A program made the position numbers and the translations under genes. A DNA stretch of 64,000 nt from Ruditapes philippinarum (taxonomy: Eukaryota): the NCBI RefSeq assembly GCF_026571515.1, contig NW_026861745.1, forward strand, positions 1 to 64,000, in the 5' to 3' direction. Positions within the stretch are counted from its first letter, which is position 1; each line of letters begins with the position of its first letter. Below the pieces are notes generated by a model. It saw only the letters and a list, made by a program, of their open reading frames with translations, was not told where the DNA came from and made no database searches. Of this stretch, positions 48,102 to 57,300 are shown piece after piece.

Positions 48102-48873
48102 TATAAGAATCTTACACCGGCTGCCGGTACAGACCGGAATATCTAGCTCGAGGGTAACTGTTTACAGCGGTTACGAGGCTCTGCCGAGTTTCCGCTTAAC
48201 AGTTTCCCGAGAGCTAGATATATTCCCGTCTGTACCAACAGCCGGTGTTTGATTCTTTTTCTTGCATATTAAATGTCAATTTCTTTCGGAACAGAAATTA
48301 TGAAAACTGATATTCTTATTACGCACTTTTTTCTTATAGTAGCGTATGAACATACAACTTCATTCATAACGGAAAAATGACGTCATCCTAAGAACGCGAT
48401 TCATTCATAAAAGTCGCGCGTCAATGACGTCATTTAAAGCACGCGACTTGTCTTACATGGGGGGGGGGGGTGTAAGACAGAGTTTTCTAGCACCGGTGAA
48501 AACGGTAGATAATCCTGTCTGAGATGCAAGAATATAAGAATCTTACACTGGCTGCCGGTACAGACCGGAATAATATTATCTAGCTCGAGGGTAACTGTTT
48601 ACGGCGGTAACGAGGCTCTACATATCAATTATTTTCAGAACAGAAATTACGAAAACTAATATTCTCATTACGCACTTTTGCTTATAGTAGCGTATGAACT
48701 CACAACTTCATTCATAACGGTTAAGTGACGTCATCCTAAGAACACAATTCATTCATTAAAGGCGCGCGACAATGACGTCATTTAAAGCACGCGACTTGTC
48801 TTACATGGGGGTGTAAGACAGGGTTTTCTAGCACCGGTGTAAACGGTAGATAATCCTGTTTGACATGCAAGAA
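48102..48873 (+). mobile_element. Head-to-tail dimer of a ~430-bp repeat (second copy internally deleted)
   Basis: Copies 48102-48532 and 48533-48873 both begin TATAAGAATCTTACAC and end ATGCAAGAA. Confidence 0.8.
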
Positions 48874-49006
48874 TTTACCGGCAAGACCGTTGCAACATTT
48901 TCTTAATCATGAGTTCAATATGGTAAAAGAGTTCTTTAAAAGTCAACAGCTACCAATCTGTTTTGCAAATTTTAATTAACAATTTCTTATTTTCACTCGA
49001 TTTTGG

Positions 49007-50038
49007 ATTTGTCTTTTGACGTTTTATCTGTGATACGCAGGCTTCATAACCTCTGATCCCCTTTCAAAATTCCATTTTATTTAGTTCCGCCCATTGTTTT
49101 CTCGTTTAGGGCACACGCTTTTTATTACTTGGGGACCATACGCCGCTTTTCATGGAATGGCACGGAAGTGTCAGATTGAAGGTTCCATGATAACCGCCGT
49201 ATGAACACATCTGCTGATGTTTCTAAATTCACAATTTTACTATTTCATGTTTAAATGTTGAATTCTGCTTAAGCCGGTGCTAGGGGGCATGGACGGTAAC
49301 TTGCACTTTCCAGTACCGTCCATGAACAGGCTCACTCAAACCGAGCCTGCAACATTTTCAATTTTGCCGTGTTGGGCTTTCTTTAGGGATTCTGTATTTA
49401 TCTATTTTATGATCACATCCGTGTTATTTGTGCCGTGTGGCGGCTGTAAAATGTCTCCCCGTACATTTAATCAATGATGTTATATTTTCGATCCTTGAAG
49501 ATCGTTCAGCACGACATTATTGTTGTGCTTGTGGTATTTTTAGTTTCAACTTTACGGAATTTTCTTGTTGGGTGGTTCCAATATTCCTACTTGAATAATA
49601 TTGAATCACCCTTAGGATATGTTGCCTGCTTTTTAAATTTGTCTTTTGACGTTTTATCTGTGATACGCAGGCTTCATAACCTCTGATCCCCTTTCAAAAT
49701 TCCATTTTATTTAGTTCCGCCCATTGTTTTCTCGTTTAGGGCACACGCTTTTTATTACTTGGGGACCATACGCCGCTTTTCATGGAATGGCACGGAAGTG
49801 TCAGATTGAAGGTTCCATGATAACCGCCGTATGAACACATCTGCTGATGTTTCTAAATTCACAATTTTACTATTTCATGTTTAAATGTTGAATTCTGCTT
49901 AAGCCGGTGCTAGGGGGCATGGACGGTAACTTGCACTTTCCAGTACCGTCCATGAACAGGCTCACTCAAACCGAGCCTGCAACATTTTCAATTTTGCCGT
50001 GTTGGGCTTTCTTTAGGGATTCTGTATTTATCTATTTT
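49007..50038. repeat. Identical ~400-bp direct duplication (offset 630 bp)
   Basis: 49007-49408 equals 49637-50038 with no difference that I could see. Confidence 0.9.
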
Positions 50039-50352
50039 TTGGAAAATGTACATAAGTAACCAAACACCACCATTTTAAGTCAGCCTTACAAGTGTGTGGT
50101 CTTATGCCTAAGGGAACTAACCCACAAAATCTTAAGAAATGAGTTCTCTGACCATGAGTACTCTTCATAAAAATCTCTATTATTTAGTCTGGTTCCCAGC
50201 TTCCTATAGTAAAAAATGTGGGAAAATTTAAACATGTGAACTATCCCACTTCAACAGTAAATCTTTACATACAAGTTTGCCAGAGCGAACCAGGAACCAA
50301 TAGTGCTTGATAAGTGTGTATGTTGTTGTGCCAAAGTGAACTATCCAGCAAA

Positions 50353-50481
50353 ATGGCGGAAACTAGAAAATGCCTCGATGAACAAATGGCAAAAATGGGA
50401 AAATAACTGAAACTCTTCTTGAAGAAATATTTCAAGAGGAGAGTGACGACTCGGTGAAAGACCCTGACTATATTCCAAGTG
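50353..50481 (+). pseudogene. Putative shared first coding exon of the Sola element (acidic leader)
   Basis: AAAATGGCG start context; reads ...ITETLLEEIFQEESDDSVKDPDYIPS-G|GTAAAA (phase-1 donor at 50482). Needs one lesion repaired: either +1 A at ~50401 (start 50353) or TGA to CGA at 50379 (start 50370, MPRRTNGK). Confidence 0.6.
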
Positions 50482-51524
50482 GTAAAACCCATTTTGTATA
50501 ATTTATTAAAGATTTAGTAGTTTTCTTAAGTCCATTGAAAATGAAAAAAAGCATGGTGTGGTGGGAGTTTTGTTTAAATGAATTACATAGTATAACATAT
50601 AAAGAAACTTGATGATTCATAATGGTGCCATTTTGCAGAAGGTGTACAGACATGAAATCATGCATTTATAACCTTTGGTTTTGCTTTATCTAAAAACAAT
50701 GGGTTAGTGCACTATAGAAATTTACAAAATACAAAGAGAATGGTGTTTATTATTGGGTTAGTTCACTTTTGGTACTGTAAACAAACCAATTGAAAATTAT
50801 TTTACCAAAATTGAAAAAAGGTTAAAGGAAAGACTTCTAAATTATATTAATGAACACAAATAAATGTTTTACATCAATAATATCTGTTATTGTGAAAATT
50901 ATAATTCTGCAGATTACTATAAGTTTGTTAAATTATTGTATGGTATAAAAAGGATATTCAAGTTTGTTTTCCTACAAATACAGAATTTATTTTCATCGAG
51001 TGGTATTTCACGAGTGGCTGTGGCCACGAGTGAAATATGATTATTTTTCTACAACAAGATGAAAATTTATCGTGTATTAATAGAAAAAACTTAAATTTTC
51101 TGTAATTATTAGAAAGAATTCCCTTTTAATTTTGTATTTTTAAGGAATTTAGAAAAAAAGTAGTCTGGCAAGACACCAGTGAAAATACGGAAAATGAAAA
51201 TGCACATTTTATTTCATCAATATTTCTTAATATTTCATTGATAAGTATAATATAAAATGAAAATATCTATTACATAAACTGCATCACAGGATTGTGAAAA
51301 AAAAAAAACATTTTATTAAAACAATATTACACTTGTGTAATAACATTTTGACGTGACATCAATTGCGTTATATACAAACATAGCGTTAAAGCGAGCACAA
51401 ATTATAATTTTCAGGGTATACGGGCATTTCAGTGCAAACATTTTTATCGCCTGTATATGGACCTTTAAAGATCATTCTGTTTTTTATATTGTTGAATATA
51501 ACGAAATGAATGAAACTGTTACAG

Positions 51525-53534
51525 ATGAGGAAAATTCTGACTATGAAATATCACAGGAAGATATAAATAACAACAATGAAGAAAAAGAAGTTGACCAAAA
51601 CTACCATGTAAAATATCCAGTGGAACATACAGATATTGATGCGGCTTGTAAAAACACAGGTATTATTGAGGCAGATATAAACAGTATTGATTCCCAAGAA
51701 ACAAGATCAATAAACTCTGTTAGTGAACCTATCGTTAATAACAATAAGAGAAAAAGGAGGGCCCCTGAAACATGGGAAAAAAATGTCAGAAAGGAGAAAC
51801 GAAACAAAGGTAAATCCTATACTACAGTAAGTGGCACAATAAAGCCAGAGAAATTTTTTTAAAGACTATGAATGTTTCTGTCCAATGAAATGTAGCATTA
51901 TTCTCAATACAGAAGCAAGAAAGAAGAGTTTTAAAACATTTTACGGGAGTGGTAGATGGGAAATACAAACAATCTACATAAATGCACATGTTAAGTCCCA
52001 CAGTGTGGAAAGGAGGTATACTGACCAAGGTAGAAATTCTAGAAGACAGAATTCTCGATATTATTACCTTAATGACTCAAATGGTACCAAGAAAAGAATT
52101 TGTAAGAATATGTTTATGAACACTCTACAGGTCGATAGTGCTCGAATACACAGAGCTATCGAAAAAATGCAAAGCGGAAACCTGAAAGACTTGAGAGAGA
52201 GGCATGAACCTAGTAATAAAGTAAGTCAAGATAAAGTCGATTTAGTCAAAACCCATATTAATAGTTTTTCTAAGTACACCTCACATTATTGCAGAAGAGA
52301 TACTGAACGCCAATATCTTTCACCAGATCTAAACCTAACGAAAATGTACACTCTTTATAGAGAATGGTGTTCTGAAAACAGCTTTGAGTATGTAAGCATG
52401 TCAATGTATAACAAAGTTTTCTATGATAACTTTAACTATTTTTTTTAAAACACCAGAGAAAGATTCCTGCAAAACATGTGATGCAAATAAAATAGCACTA
52501 ATGGTAGATGATAACGAAAAACGGAAGGAAATTGAAAAGACATACTGAGCATTTAAACATTAGTAAAATAGCACGTGAAGCCCTTAAATTTGATCAGAAT
52601 GTAGTCAAAACAGATAAAAAGCAAGTCACAATCACATTTGATCTTCAAAAAACTTTACCAACCCCTAGAATTCAGACCAGTTTGGCTTACTACAAGAGAC
52701 AGTTATGGGTTTATAACCTAGAATACACTCATATCAAAGTGATGATGAAAAAAGTTACATGTTTATGTGGCATGAAGCTGTTGCTTCACGCGGGGCTCAA
52801 GAGGTTTCTTCATGTTTGAAATATTTTACAAAGAATTTCCTCGATAGTGAAATCAATCATCTGACTGCCTGGTCTGATTCGTGCGGTGGACAGAACCGAA
52901 ACATAAAGGTTTGTTTATTATGGATGCATTTAGTTGCAACCACATCTCTTGAAACTGTTGACCATAAATTTCTCGTTAGTGGCCATTCCTATTTACCTTG
53001 TGATAGTGATTTTGGAGACATTGAACGTTCCCTTAAGTATACTCCTAACATGTATTATCCGACTGAATGGTATGATTTGGTACGTAAATCAAGAAGCAAG
53101 CACCCATTCAAAGTCATAGAGATGTCTTGCAATGATTTCTTTTCAACAGAAAATTTAGAAAAATCCATTATAAACAGAAAAAAGAATGCCAACAACGAAA
53201 AGGTAGAGTGGCTTAAGATTAGGCATATAAGGTTTCAGAAGTCAAGACCATACATAATGCAATACAAGTACACACATGAAGAAACAGAGTTTAATGAGGT
53301 CAACTTAGCACCCAAACGACGAAGCCGTGGACAGGAAGTTCCGGGTATTGATGTTGAAGTTGGTTTGCTATATCCAAATGGAAGAAAAAAAGTCAAGAGA
53401 AGGCAAAGGACCTTAAGGAACTTTTGCCTTACATTCCACTTGTGCATCACAGTTTTTATAAATCATTACAAGTTGACAGATCTATAGAGAATGACGATCT
53501 TTGTGGAAACAGTATTGGCTATAACTTAGAATAA
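51525..53534 (+). pseudogene. Sola1-type DDD transposase (frameshifted)
   Basis: ORFs 51353-51862, 51885-52448, 52508-52819 and 52759-53487 join through 1-bp shifts. Motifs: WEKNVRK..RNKGKSY, CFCPMKC, SHYCR..YL, F.TPEKDSCKTCD, TFDLQKTLPTP..YYKRQLWVYNLGIH, WHEAVASRGAQEVSSCL, WSDSCGGQNRN, FLVSGHSYLPCDSDFG, KDLKELLPYIP..HSFY; stop TAA 53532-53534. Sola1 assignment is from recalled motifs plus the 4-bp TSD. Confidence 0.85.
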
Positions 53535-53555
53535 TTTTCTTGTTTCTCATTCCAG

Positions 53556-54392
53556 TGCGACTGACAGACTTGCCGAATGAGTTGCTCTTGAAAGTTCTTG
53601 GAAATTTGGCGACAAAAGAATTGCTCAAGGTTGCTGTCACTTGCAAATTTCTTTACAATGTTGCACACGAAAAGCAGTTGTGGAAAAATGTCACAATGGA
53701 AATACCACAGGATTCTTTGTATGATGACAACAGTTTTGGACATTTATTTGATCTGCATGCTCAACATATAAATATTTTGAAATTCAAAAGCGCCAAAGGT
53801 CAAATGTATGATATCAATGGAAACCCTGCTGCTATAAATCTTCATTTTCAATTTCAGTTGTGTCGTTGCAGCAGTATAACATGCATTGACTTAAGCAGGA
53901 ATTTGTTAGTGCAAAGTCTAAGTTTTGTTAAATGTATGCCACATTTAAATTTTTTAGATATAAGTGGATGCAACTTTATTGATTCTTCAGAATTACATCA
54001 TTTATCATGTCACCCAGGACTGAAAAAAACTTGAAATGACAAATTTTGAATGCCTTCGGATGAATAAACCTATTGTAGTTGACTTACCACAAGTTGTCAA
54101 TATCTCAGAACTTAATATTGAACGAAGTACATATCTATCGCCTGACCAGTGCACTTTATTGCTTAGTAAGAGCCACCTGAAGGTTTTAGAATTCTCACCT
54201 AAATGGAAGAAACCACCTGCTTGGTGTGTTTTCTATGAAGCTTATCAACATATTGAATTTGGATTGGATTTTCAAGCAGTTTATATGTGTCAGACAAATG
54301 GATTCCGATCTCGAAGATTTATAGACATGATTAATAAAGCGCCATTATGGGATACCTGGGACAGTGATGAATCAGATGATGATTTGAATTAA
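53556..54392 (+). CDS. F-box/LRR protein (FBXL-like) inside the transposon; one frameshift in the A7 run at 54023-54029
   Basis: F-box LTDLPNELLLKVLGNLATKELLKVAVTCKFLYNVAHEKQLWKNV; LRRs ITCIDLSRN, LNFLDISGC, LKKLEM, ISELNIER, LKVLEFS; acidic C-tail; strong acceptor TTTTCTTGTTTCTCATTCCAG at 53535-53555. Confidence 0.8.
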
Positions 54393-57300
54393 TGTTGTTC
54401 AGTTTCAATTGTTCTTACTAGTTTGATTTTTTTAAAACTTCAATAGCTTGGATTAGTTCACTTTGGCATATGAACATGTGATGTTACTTATACACAAATG
54501 CCAGAATGAACTATTCCACAAAATCATGGTTTTAAAAAAAGCCACATAAGCAGTATCAAATAAACAGTTGAGAAACAATTCTTCTTTGTCTATATTTTAT
54601 TTTGTAAAAGTAAAATATTGTCTCCCTGAAATATATTTTGTTGGGGGATTTGGAAACCTTCAGTGGCAATTTTCTGAAAATCGAAAGTATAAGGGTTAGT
54701 CCCATCTGGCATCAGACCACTCAAGTGTAAGGCAACATCATTGATATCGTTGTCATTTTTTAGAATGTGTATAAGGATCTTGTCGTAATAAATAATCAGA
54801 ACCAAATCGAAAAGTATCTCGTATTATTTTTAAATGGTGGTATAAAGGTAAAATGCATCAATCTTTCTAATACATGATGCATGTAAGGAAGAGACGATAC
54901 CATTTTAACTGTAAGAGAACCGTACTAAAGTAACATTTCGTATATTTTTGTAACGTTCTCACGTGAAATATGCATTTGTATCTTGGAACGCAAATAATAA
55001 ACAGTGTCACATCCAAACGCTATATATAACATTTTTTATGACATAGTGGCAAAAAAAGATGACACTCGATGAAACATACGAGAAGTGCAATGAAATAAGT
55101 GCATGTCGTGTCGACTTTATGGCGACGTCTGATTTTTATTTTTGTATTATGATGTTTCTCATTTGTTTCGTAAAGAATATTAAAATAATTAGTTAAGTTA
55201 GTAATTAGATTTTAATACCAAGCACTCGCAAAAACAGACTGTTCCTTGTCATGTGTTAATGGTGCCCGTAAAACTATGTAAGGTTGATTATAAATGATTG
55301 TCGTAAGTCATAAAACATTCATAAAGCCATTTTTATTGATTCTATATACGGTAGTATAAAAGCTAATTAATAAATGATTAATGGCGTGCTTTAGAGAATA
55401 TAATACAAACTTACATGTGCAGTTCAAAAGAAATCCGTTTAACGCGTGCAGCATCTATATTATTATTTGGAAGCATCAGCTTCCATATTTATAAAGACAA
55501 ACATGCCATATTTTAGGATAGATAATGACAAGTAAAAATTTTATGAGGTTAATCGGTCTAAAAATGAATGATTGGAAATGAATGCATATGATTTGACAAG
55601 TTTTTTTTATCGATTTCCATCGATGTTTTATCCTAATGAAGTATTTCATGAAGCTAAAGTTTATAATTTTACAAGGTCACTGTGTCAATATTTATACAAA
55701 TAACATGTCTGTATGAATAGAAAGTATGTCTATTGCCATTTAATGACACTGAAACGGAATCTGTCATGCACTGTTGAAAGGATTATCATAACAAAATAAA
55801 CTCAATAACGCTGCATCATAAGACAACGGGTTTAAAAACACTTTATCAAATATGGTAAGCATAATCACATGTAAATAAAAACAAAACAACAAATCCATTT
55901 GTAAATTTTTTTAAAGTATAATTTTAAACGTGTATTATCAGTTTGTAAACAAATGTAATATGTTTGCCTCTTAATAAAACATTTGTGTTCCGTGTTCAGG
56001 ATATAAAATCGTACTAAACTTCACTAATAATAAAGAAAGAAACTTGATTTATTGACATTACACTTGCGTTCTTTGAAAAGATTCGCCGTATATGTATACA
56101 TCTTTATATATATTCTATTTTATCGTATAGAGATAACCGCAGTATGTAAGTTTTCCAATTTAGAATATTGTCATCTTCCTACGCTATTCTTTTTAAACCA
56201 GTTAAATAAGTTTTTATTGGAGGTAAGTTGAAAAGTTTTACCTTAGGAAGGATTGTTTGTTTTGTTTGGTTTTATGGCACATACACAGTTTAGGTCATAT
56301 GGCGCCGAAACAGGAAATTTAGTAAACACGAGAACTCACAATGTGGCAAAATTGAAAATGTTTTTTATTTAAACCAAAAGTGCAATGTTAATTAAATGAT
56401 AATGTGTCCTGCTTGGTCAACAACCTTTTCATTATTTACCATCCAAACTGTAAAAAAGTATTTACTTTAATTTTCCAATATCTAAAGCTTGACACCGGAA
56501 GCCTAGACAATATCTTAAATATATGAGAATATTGGCTGCGAGGCCGTACTATAACAAACATCTTATTCAGAGCCTAGGGACTTTTGAAAAGGCTTAAAGC
56601 AATACGTTTTGGATATAGAGCATATAATAATATATTAAACATAGTGTTTCACGAACGGAATTTCCCTTGGCGCCATATATCATACTTTGCTATTCTTGAA
56701 AATGTCTTACATATTCTGGTTAACGCCATTATAATCTATAACTTTAAGCAGTGCCTGGTAGATTTACAGTGTTAGGTAGACTTAAAATAAACATTTCTTT
56801 TTAATAACCGATTCCATTTCCTTTACTTATTAGATAGAGTTTATACCGCGAGATTGACTGAACGATTACCTGTGACTTACCAGTGTAACGTTTTTGCAGC
56901 ATACAAATTGAAGTGTACCTAAATGTATTCTCAAAACTGTTTAATATTTAAGCTCATTCTCGCACTGAGAGCATATATATTTTCATTTATTTCAGCCATT
57001 CTGAAATAAAATAAAACACGTTTTATTGCATAGCATAGGAAGATAGACATTACAGTAGGAATAAAATACTCGATCACGATTATTTTCTTTTTTTTTAGTT
57101 GAACAATATATGTATCTTGAAAATTATACCGAATATGACGTCGAAGTCACGCTGAGTAACAAAAACATGTAAGACATTTTCAAATTTTCAAACAGAACGA
57201 AAACTCTTCTCATCTGATAAATACAGCCTATTTTCTGAAACCTTTTATTTTGTTATTTTAATAACCGTTCAATGTTATATTCTATTTTATATTCTATTTT

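Follow-up and report, generated by a model that had tools for sequence, protein, structure and literature searches.

Among DNA transposons that yield two products, the En/Spm-CACTA elements generate their TnpA and TnpD proteins from a shared leader by alternative splicing, and poleroviruses, which are RNA viruses, encode P0, a minimal F-box-like protein. The Sola superfamily with its Sola1 DNA transposons is credited to Bao et al. (2009), as cited in two later papers (PMC3845634, PMC4455052). A 4-bp target-site duplication of the form A-W-W/D-T is a hallmark of Sola1, and an autonomous Sola1 element has been described in Megachile rotundata (PMC3845634); curated bivalve Sola1 elements have a mean length of 5.4 kb (PMC10294476). 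Here, we describe an element located at positions 50094-54722 of a 64,000-nucleotide stretch of DNA from Ruditapes philippinarum (contig NW_026861745.1, positions 1 to 64,000; hereafter, the window). Like Sola1, it is a large cut-and-paste element (4.6 kb) bounded by terminal inverted repeats (TIRs) that start with G, it is flanked by a 4-bp duplication of the A-W-W/D-T type, and its transposase has homologues in insects in which Sola1 has been described. The difference is that it adds a conserved gene for a protein with an F-box and leucine-rich repeats (LRRs).

The initial annotation of the window had taken Sola elements to be transposase-only, but Sola2 elements with a second gene, Fanzor1, have been published from Dictyostelium and Polysphondylium (PMC3627910). 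These share with the present element AWWT-type 4-bp duplications and a second protein gene beside the transposase; however, their passenger is a TnpB-like Fanzor nuclease rather than a ubiquitin-ligase adaptor, and they belong to another Sola group and to other hosts. Our search of the literature turned up no F-box gene described for Sola or for other animal DNA transposons. The nearest precedents are the capture of F-box gene fragments by Drosophila telomeric retrotransposons (PMC13534243), the F-box antidotes, termed KSS, of the toxin-antidote elements of Caenorhabditis tropicalis (PMC12680543), and the F-box proteins of viruses.

Our reading, to which we assign a probability of roughly 0.7, is that the window holds an inactive copy of a Sola1-like DUF7869 transposon with an aspartate-aspartate-glutamate (DDE) transposase, and that this cut-and-paste family regularly carries an F-box/LRR protein of the FBXL type (~280-320 aa) in an old pairing, the F-box gene probably being spliced to a leader and its product most likely docking on SKP1-CUL1-F-box (SCF) ubiquitin ligases.

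Boundaries and copies of the element

Both ends of the element were read and compared by BLAST with other genomic copies, which were sought by DNA search of the window's own 1.4-Gb assembly. In every retrieved copy, homology sets in at 50093/50094 and breaks off at 54722-54728, and the coordinates proposed in the initial annotation proved exact, both by copy homology and by the flanking duplications. The sequence GTGTGGTCTTATGCC... opens the element at 50094, and its complement closes it at 54722. The two termini, GTGTGGTC... and ...GACCACTC, form an imperfect TIR of 31 bp (25/31 matching) that is conserved across copies; the repeat finder run on the window did not report this TIR because it is imperfect. 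All six two-ended copies are flanked by 4-bp duplications of the form A-N-N-T (AAGT in the window; ATTT, ATTT, AATT, AACT and AATT in the others), and four of five further single ends fit the same pattern, the exception being the divergent right end in L063. Formally, the duplication could instead comprise 2 bp, with T...A belonging to the termini.

The closest relative, C8441, is a full-length copy that is 96% identical to the window element. C11523 carries a 1.1-kb internal deletion in its 5΄ part, C10498 contains indels, and C15011 and C7858 are internal-deletion derivatives in which 1.1 kb at the left end and the final 770 bp remain. C10880, C11741 and C10009 each contributed a single end, and diverged relatives with 70-88% DNA identity were found at C9602, C7508, C7051 and C1232. 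The F-box region is present in every full copy, inside the TIRs. Multiple copies that keep the F-box/LRR gene and differ in their target duplications had been named by the initial annotation as evidence that would support its reading, and the gene indeed lies inside the TIRs in four insertions with different duplications.

The two deletion derivatives (L055 at C15011 and L056 at C7858) are non-autonomous and lack the same segment, corresponding to window positions 51196-53959. Because they have this deletion in common but different target duplications, the deleted form itself must have been mobilised at least once. The derivative at C7858 additionally contains ~2.2 kb of unrelated sequence. 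Separately, the diverged copies L058 (C7508) and L059 (C7051) have in common an insertion of ~116 bp in the F-box/LRR frame, at the position corresponding to window 53814/53815. The inserted sequence has A-rich ends and lacks GT..AG borders, and it probably represents a minor secondary insertion inherited from a common ancestor of the two copies.

The transposase and the F-box/LRR frame

A chain of same-strand open reading frames (ORFs) spans 51353-54392. Its first part is the transposase, which in the window is broken into four frames (51353-51862, 51885-52448, 52508-52819 and 52759-53487). The last of these pieces matches the Pfam family DUF7869 (PF25273, E = 5e-6), and a 310-aa open piece from C8441 retrieved 613 homologues, with E values down to 1e-111 and a best identity of 59%. 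The named sources among these relatives are insects, including Megachile rotundata, aphids and beetles, and the nearest language-model clusters come from Cnidaria, Arthropoda and Rotifera. Because the homologues align straight across the frame breaks, these breaks are frameshifts and not introns; the C-terminus of the homologues coincides with the stop codon in the window. In an alignment of 28 homologues (A4), two aspartates (D13 and D92) are each present in at least 90% of the proteins and a glutamate (E141, in the motif GxIE) is invariant. All three residues are found in the window and, to judge from this conservation, are presumed to form the catalytic DDE triad. The gene has its own ATG, and in other copies an in-frame stop immediately precedes this ATG. 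None of the copies of the window family (0) encodes an intact transposase, and the DUF7869 superfamily is abundant in the genome (at least 661 first-look candidates).

The F-box/LRR frame follows in the same orientation as the transposase, and its stop codon lies 330 bp from the end of the element. Its location within an element bounded by TIRs and target-site duplications, as initially annotated, is real according to the Pfam matches, the ORFs and the element ends. In the frame that opens at 53540, residues 9-52 match the Pfam family F-box-like (PF12937) with E = 5e-12 and 45.8 bits, well above the curated cut-off of 24.3; the related family PF00646 (F-box) gives 31.3 bits against a cut-off of 20.5, and weaker Pfam LRR matches lie C-terminal to the F-box. 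The exon thus delimited begins with the F-box (~53564-53695), followed by the LRRs, a conserved C-terminal block and an acidic tail.

Some details of the initial description had to be revised. The frame had been given as a single one over 53556-54392, but in the window an extra A divides it into two ORFs (53540-54034 and 54036-54392), and it had been placed 21 nt after the transposase stop, whereas the exon starts 68 nt, and the open frame 37 nt, after that codon. The judgement that the frame is no more decayed than the transposase was borne out, the latter itself being in four frames here. Other copies have other lesions in the F-box frame: an additional T in C8441, a single TGA in C11523, and another nonsense codon that is common to C15011 and C7858. 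As the single lesions differ from one close copy to the next, the source element had an intact ~278-codon frame when it was copied. The window copy is dead, with a frameshift in the leader, at least three breaks in the transposase frame and one frameshift in the F-box frame.

Fragments 87-90% identical to this F-box/LRR frame (P0121, P0217 and P0126) also occur in JGI/IMG metagenome contigs of 1.4-1.6 kb; given this level of identity, those samples contain DNA of the host or of a close relative. One further locus from a metagenome scan with alignment A2 (L064) was set aside as irrelevant: it has 63% GC, a generic LRR and no transposase.

The F-box/LRR protein belongs to a small family. A HMMER search of 1.84 billion representative proteins returned 96 relatives, nine of them at E ≤ 1e-10. 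Proteins of ~245-311 aa from other assemblies align over their full length with 25-40% identity and end in the conserved block FSPxWxxPPxW...FGxDF...APFW and the acidic tail. A protein homology search with a 216-aa F-box piece of the element returned nothing at E ≤ 1e-3; the same kind of search with the family alignment returned 15 proteins. When the family profile was compared with known proteins, FBXL2 was matched with E = 1e-28 (residues 15-204, covering the F-box and the first LRRs) and SKP2 with E = 1e-23, and FBXL17 and FBXL3 were also found; the E values for FBXL2, SKP2 and FBXL17 range from 1e-28 to 1e-17. AlphaFold gave confident models for both the 216-aa piece (pLDDT 87.6) and the intact homologue P0123 (pLDDT 88.5), which show three F-box helices followed by strand-helix repeats. 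Top Foldseek matches were SKP2, FBXL2, FBXL17 and KDM2A, the best being SKP1-bound FBXL proteins, and the language-model neighbours were F-box/LRR clusters. By profile and predicted fold, the protein is of the FBXL type. As in SKP2, FBXL2 and FBXL17, the LRRs come straight after the F-box; unlike them, the protein is shorter (~280 aa, with ~5-6 repeats), has its own C-terminal block and acidic tail, and is encoded by a transposon.

Recurrence of the gene pair in other transposase families

In the subfamilies represented by C9602, C7508 and C7051 (70-83% DNA identity), the F-box gene directly follows the transposase with the same junction. A six-frame protein search further identified C1791, whose transposase is 42% identical to that of the window and which has an open F-box/LRR frame of 219 aa ~150 nt past the estimated end of the transposase. 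A one-off capture, which the initial annotation had named as one outcome that would speak against an integral gene, does not agree with the presence of the F-box in three diverged subfamilies and in the C1791 family.

We then ran a profile of the F-box protein family on the same genome, obtained 93 matches and crossed their coordinates with those of the transposase matches. At 20 further loci (Table 1), the DDE domain is preceded on its own strand by an F-box/LRR frame at a distance of 1.4-1.9 kb (3.7 kb at C6094). Because 1.4-1.9 kb corresponds to the N-terminal half of the transposase, the F-box and transposase frames abut by their coordinates. The best-matching F-box frames at these loci are open for 239-276 aa, some weaker ones contain stops, and several of the transposases have open frames of 750-907 aa. 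On the criteria of frame length and score, the loci represent about seven families, with transposases 25-35% identical to that of the window. A same-strand transposase neighbour was found for 15 of the 22 best F-box matches outside the window family, whereas the chance expectation, as a rough estimate, is ~0.001 per locus. The gene order is transposase followed by F-box in the window family, and F-box followed by transposase in most others. Since the pairing recurs in deeply diverged transposase lineages, it is old and exists in two gene orders. The initial description of the F-box/LRR frame as an integral second gene is accordingly well supported by its position between the TIRs of independent insertions, its retention in diverged subfamilies and its proximity to DUF7869 transposases at ~20 further loci of distant families.

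The pairing is confined to part of the superfamily, because four long transposase frames (C14537, C2674, C10005 and C15381) have no F-box neighbour; among the 12 transposase frames that reach 700 aa or more, eight have one. At three of these four loci, the DUF7869 domains (C14537:25545-26474, C15381:1367-2281 and C2674:35-739) sit in open frames of 1017-1344 aa, and these lineages may have other fused domains.

Several points weigh against our reading. The Sola1-like assignment made in the initial annotation is likely but not proven: it is supported indirectly, by a 4-bp A-W-D-T-like target duplication and by the distribution of homologues, one of which is a predicted protein of Megachile rotundata. 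The ~20 further loci were compared by coordinates alone. This would be compatible with coincidence, in which Sola1-like elements insert beside a host F-box/LRR family or both accumulate in repeat-rich regions. We consider coincidence extremely improbable, given that the gene is enclosed by the TIRs in the four insertions of the window family and that strand, order and spacing are nearly constant at the other loci, a pattern not produced by random insertion. In addition, Nei-Gojobori estimates of the ratio of nonsynonymous to synonymous substitution rates (dN/dS, ω) for the close group against diverged decayed copies were 0.5-0.9 for the F-box gene, 0.4-0.7 for the transposase and 0.45-1.9 for out-of-frame controls; neutral decay after insertion dominates these comparisons, and on such decayed copies dN/dS does not separate constraint from neutrality for either gene.

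The overlap of these ω values with those of the out-of-frame controls would be compatible with a host FBXL gene or gene fragment having been acquired once, by transduplication of the Pack-MULE type, and being carried as neutral cargo without a role, and the fragments captured by Drosophila telomeric retrotransposons provide a parallel. Such passive capture is nevertheless very unlikely in our estimation. The pairing recurs with transposases that are only 25-42% identical, in two gene orders and with open frames of constant size; members of the F-box family in other assemblies are conserved over their entire length; and no close host-gene relative was found among the 1.84 billion proteins, where the nine matches at E ≤ 1e-10 are few and the whole-length matches are small proteins (170-311 aa). 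What speaks for constraint on the F-box gene are its conservation throughout the family and the large number of open frames.

Table 1. Positions of features of the element in the window, and further loci with the gene pair
Feature	Position	Strand	Basis
Left target-site duplication, AAGT	50090..50093	.	Identical 4 bases at 54723-54726
Left TIR, 31 bp, 25/31 complementary to right end	50094..50124	+	Homology of copies starts here
17-bp subterminal motif (GCCAAAGKGAACTAWCC-like), six copies	50106-50122 (+), 50330-50346 (+), 50756-50772 (-), 54451-54467 (-), 54500-54516 (+), 54694-54710 (-)		Motif scan
Candidate 5΄ leader exon: ATG at 50354, 43 codons + 1 nt, donor G/GTAAAA after 50481, phase 1	50354..50481	+	Copies
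Transposase gene, ~660 codons in the family; stop 53485-53487	51506..53487	+	ORF list, Pfam DUF7869, homologues
Presumed DDE triad	D in TFDL 52640-52642; D in SDSCGGQNRN 52876-52878; E in GDIE 53023-53025	+	28-homologue alignment
Putative polypyrimidine tract and AG splice acceptor (CAG) before the F-box exon	53534..53555	+	Kept in close copies and C7508
F-box/LRR exon, ~278 codons; stop 54390-54392	53556..54392	+	Pfam, copy alignment, profile, fold
Window-specific 1-nt insertion that frameshifts F-box/LRR	54023..54029	+	7 A in the window; 6 A in C8441, C11523, C15011 and C7858; 5 A in C10498
Right TIR	54692..54722	-	End comparison
Right target-site duplication, AAGT	54723..54726	.	Flank comparison
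Further loci with F-box upstream (20)	C3623, C4552, C13580, C4655, C15570, C14589, C14603, C1511, C9400, C11327, C9571, C9173, C4098, C4831, C11266, C1258, C15786, C4712, C6628, C6094		

The 17-bp motif listed in Table 1 resembles the inner part of the TIR. All six matches lie inside the element, in its subterminal regions, compared with 0.41 expected in the whole 64-kb window, and none of 100 shuffles reached six; these motifs are plausible candidates for transposase-binding sites. An Rfam search over 48800-55200 gave zero matches. Just left of the element, two 300-nt direct repeats (48988-49287 and 49618-49917) are 97% identical and spaced by 630 bp. The same sequence, for which Rfam likewise returned nothing, recurs near other loci (L060 and L062) with 84-95% identity, and has the appearance of a tandem or high-copy repeat with no relation to the transposon.

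Expression model and possible role

The initial annotation had described the F-box gene as having no introns, a description that is questionable when the entire gene is considered: upstream of the F-box, the exon contains no in-frame ATG, and it begins at a strong candidate splice acceptor. This acceptor is of phase 1, as is the donor of the candidate leader exon near the left end of the element. In the window, the leader frame is lost through a 1-nt deletion near 50399, but the translated leader of C8441 is open, and the missing base is present in those copies whose sequence here is otherwise free of indels (C10880 from ~50375). C15011 and C7858 have one extra base in the leader, and C10498 and C11741 have larger indels. 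In all searches, the leader and F-box exons were handled apart, and the leader peptide gave no significant match to the fetched proteins. Homologous proteins from other assemblies contain, just N-terminal of the F-box, residues such as FIPV, ISG, FSG and LTG, which resemble a translated pyrimidine tract followed by CAG/G; this resemblance points to an acceptor shared by the nearest relatives as a family trait. More distant family members have a Met directly at the F-box. A mini-exon between the transposase stop and the F-box exon (ATG 53491, with an intron of 44 nt) was rejected, its phase being wrong and the intron too short.

Most likely, therefore, to the extent that splicing can be read from sequence, the F-box exon is joined to the 50354-50481 leader. 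Two arrangements may then be envisaged: the F-box gene could contain the transposase gene in its intron, or both products could use one leader. The latter would be similar to TnpA and TnpD of En/Spm-CACTA, in which a 5΄ leader and alternative downstream coding exons give two proteins per element; the differences are that splicing is here predicted and that the second product is an F-box/LRR protein and not a DNA-binding accessory factor.

A shared leader also raises the possibility of a single gene, in which the F-box/LRR part would be a domain or an isoform of the transposase, produced by splicing or frameshifting, that tethers the transposase to an SCF ligase or controls its own turnover. 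An AG at 51525-51526, just after the transposase ATG, is a phase-1 acceptor and, like that of the F-box exon, fits the same leader donor, and by coordinates the F-box frame abuts the start of a long transposase frame in the loci of the upstream type. We nonetheless consider a single gene unlikely. The transposase closes at its stop codon, at the position where the homologues of other species end, and a C-terminal extension by the F-box was rejected on the same ground. Furthermore, the F-box exon is preceded by a 68-nt spacer with its own acceptor, the family transposase starts with an ATG of its own, which in other copies comes right after an in-frame stop, and none of 120 transposase homologues matches any of 109 F-box family proteins.

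In the two-gene arrangement that we favor, the F-box would most likely dock on host SKP1-CUL1, as its family membership suggests, and the short LRR arc would hand a protein to the ubiquitin system to the benefit of the element. The foremost candidate for such a target would be a host factor that restrains transposition, followed by the transposase itself, whose dosage would then be controlled. By analogy, polerovirus P0 and the KSS antidotes are also cases in which a selfish element provides the substrate-recognition subunit and borrows the SKP1-CUL1 core of the host, although P0 is minimal and comes from an RNA virus, and the KSS proteins belong to toxin-antidote loci and not to transposons. 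We tentatively raise a more specific possibility, which we regard as considerably less probable than the gene pairing itself, namely that an entire clade of animal Sola1-like transposons counters host defence with a self-encoded SCF substrate receptor, which sends a silencing or restricting host factor (of the piRNA (PIWI-interacting RNA) pathway, chromatin or DNA repair) to the proteasome.

If true, this would be the transposon counterpart of viral F-box suppressors. Transposons are usually viewed as passive targets of silencing, whereas a conserved ubiquitin-ligase adaptor encoded by the element would be an active tool acting on host protein stability, as in viruses. There is also a consequence for annotation: short F-box/LRR genes adjoining DUF7869 proteins are probably transposon genes and not host genes, and could inflate FBXL gene counts. 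The copy in the window is a fossil, and its value lies in the family and in its apparently intact relatives. With ~20 loci in roughly seven distinct families, several of which have both genes open, the genome may contain families that are still sending a host factor to the proteasome.

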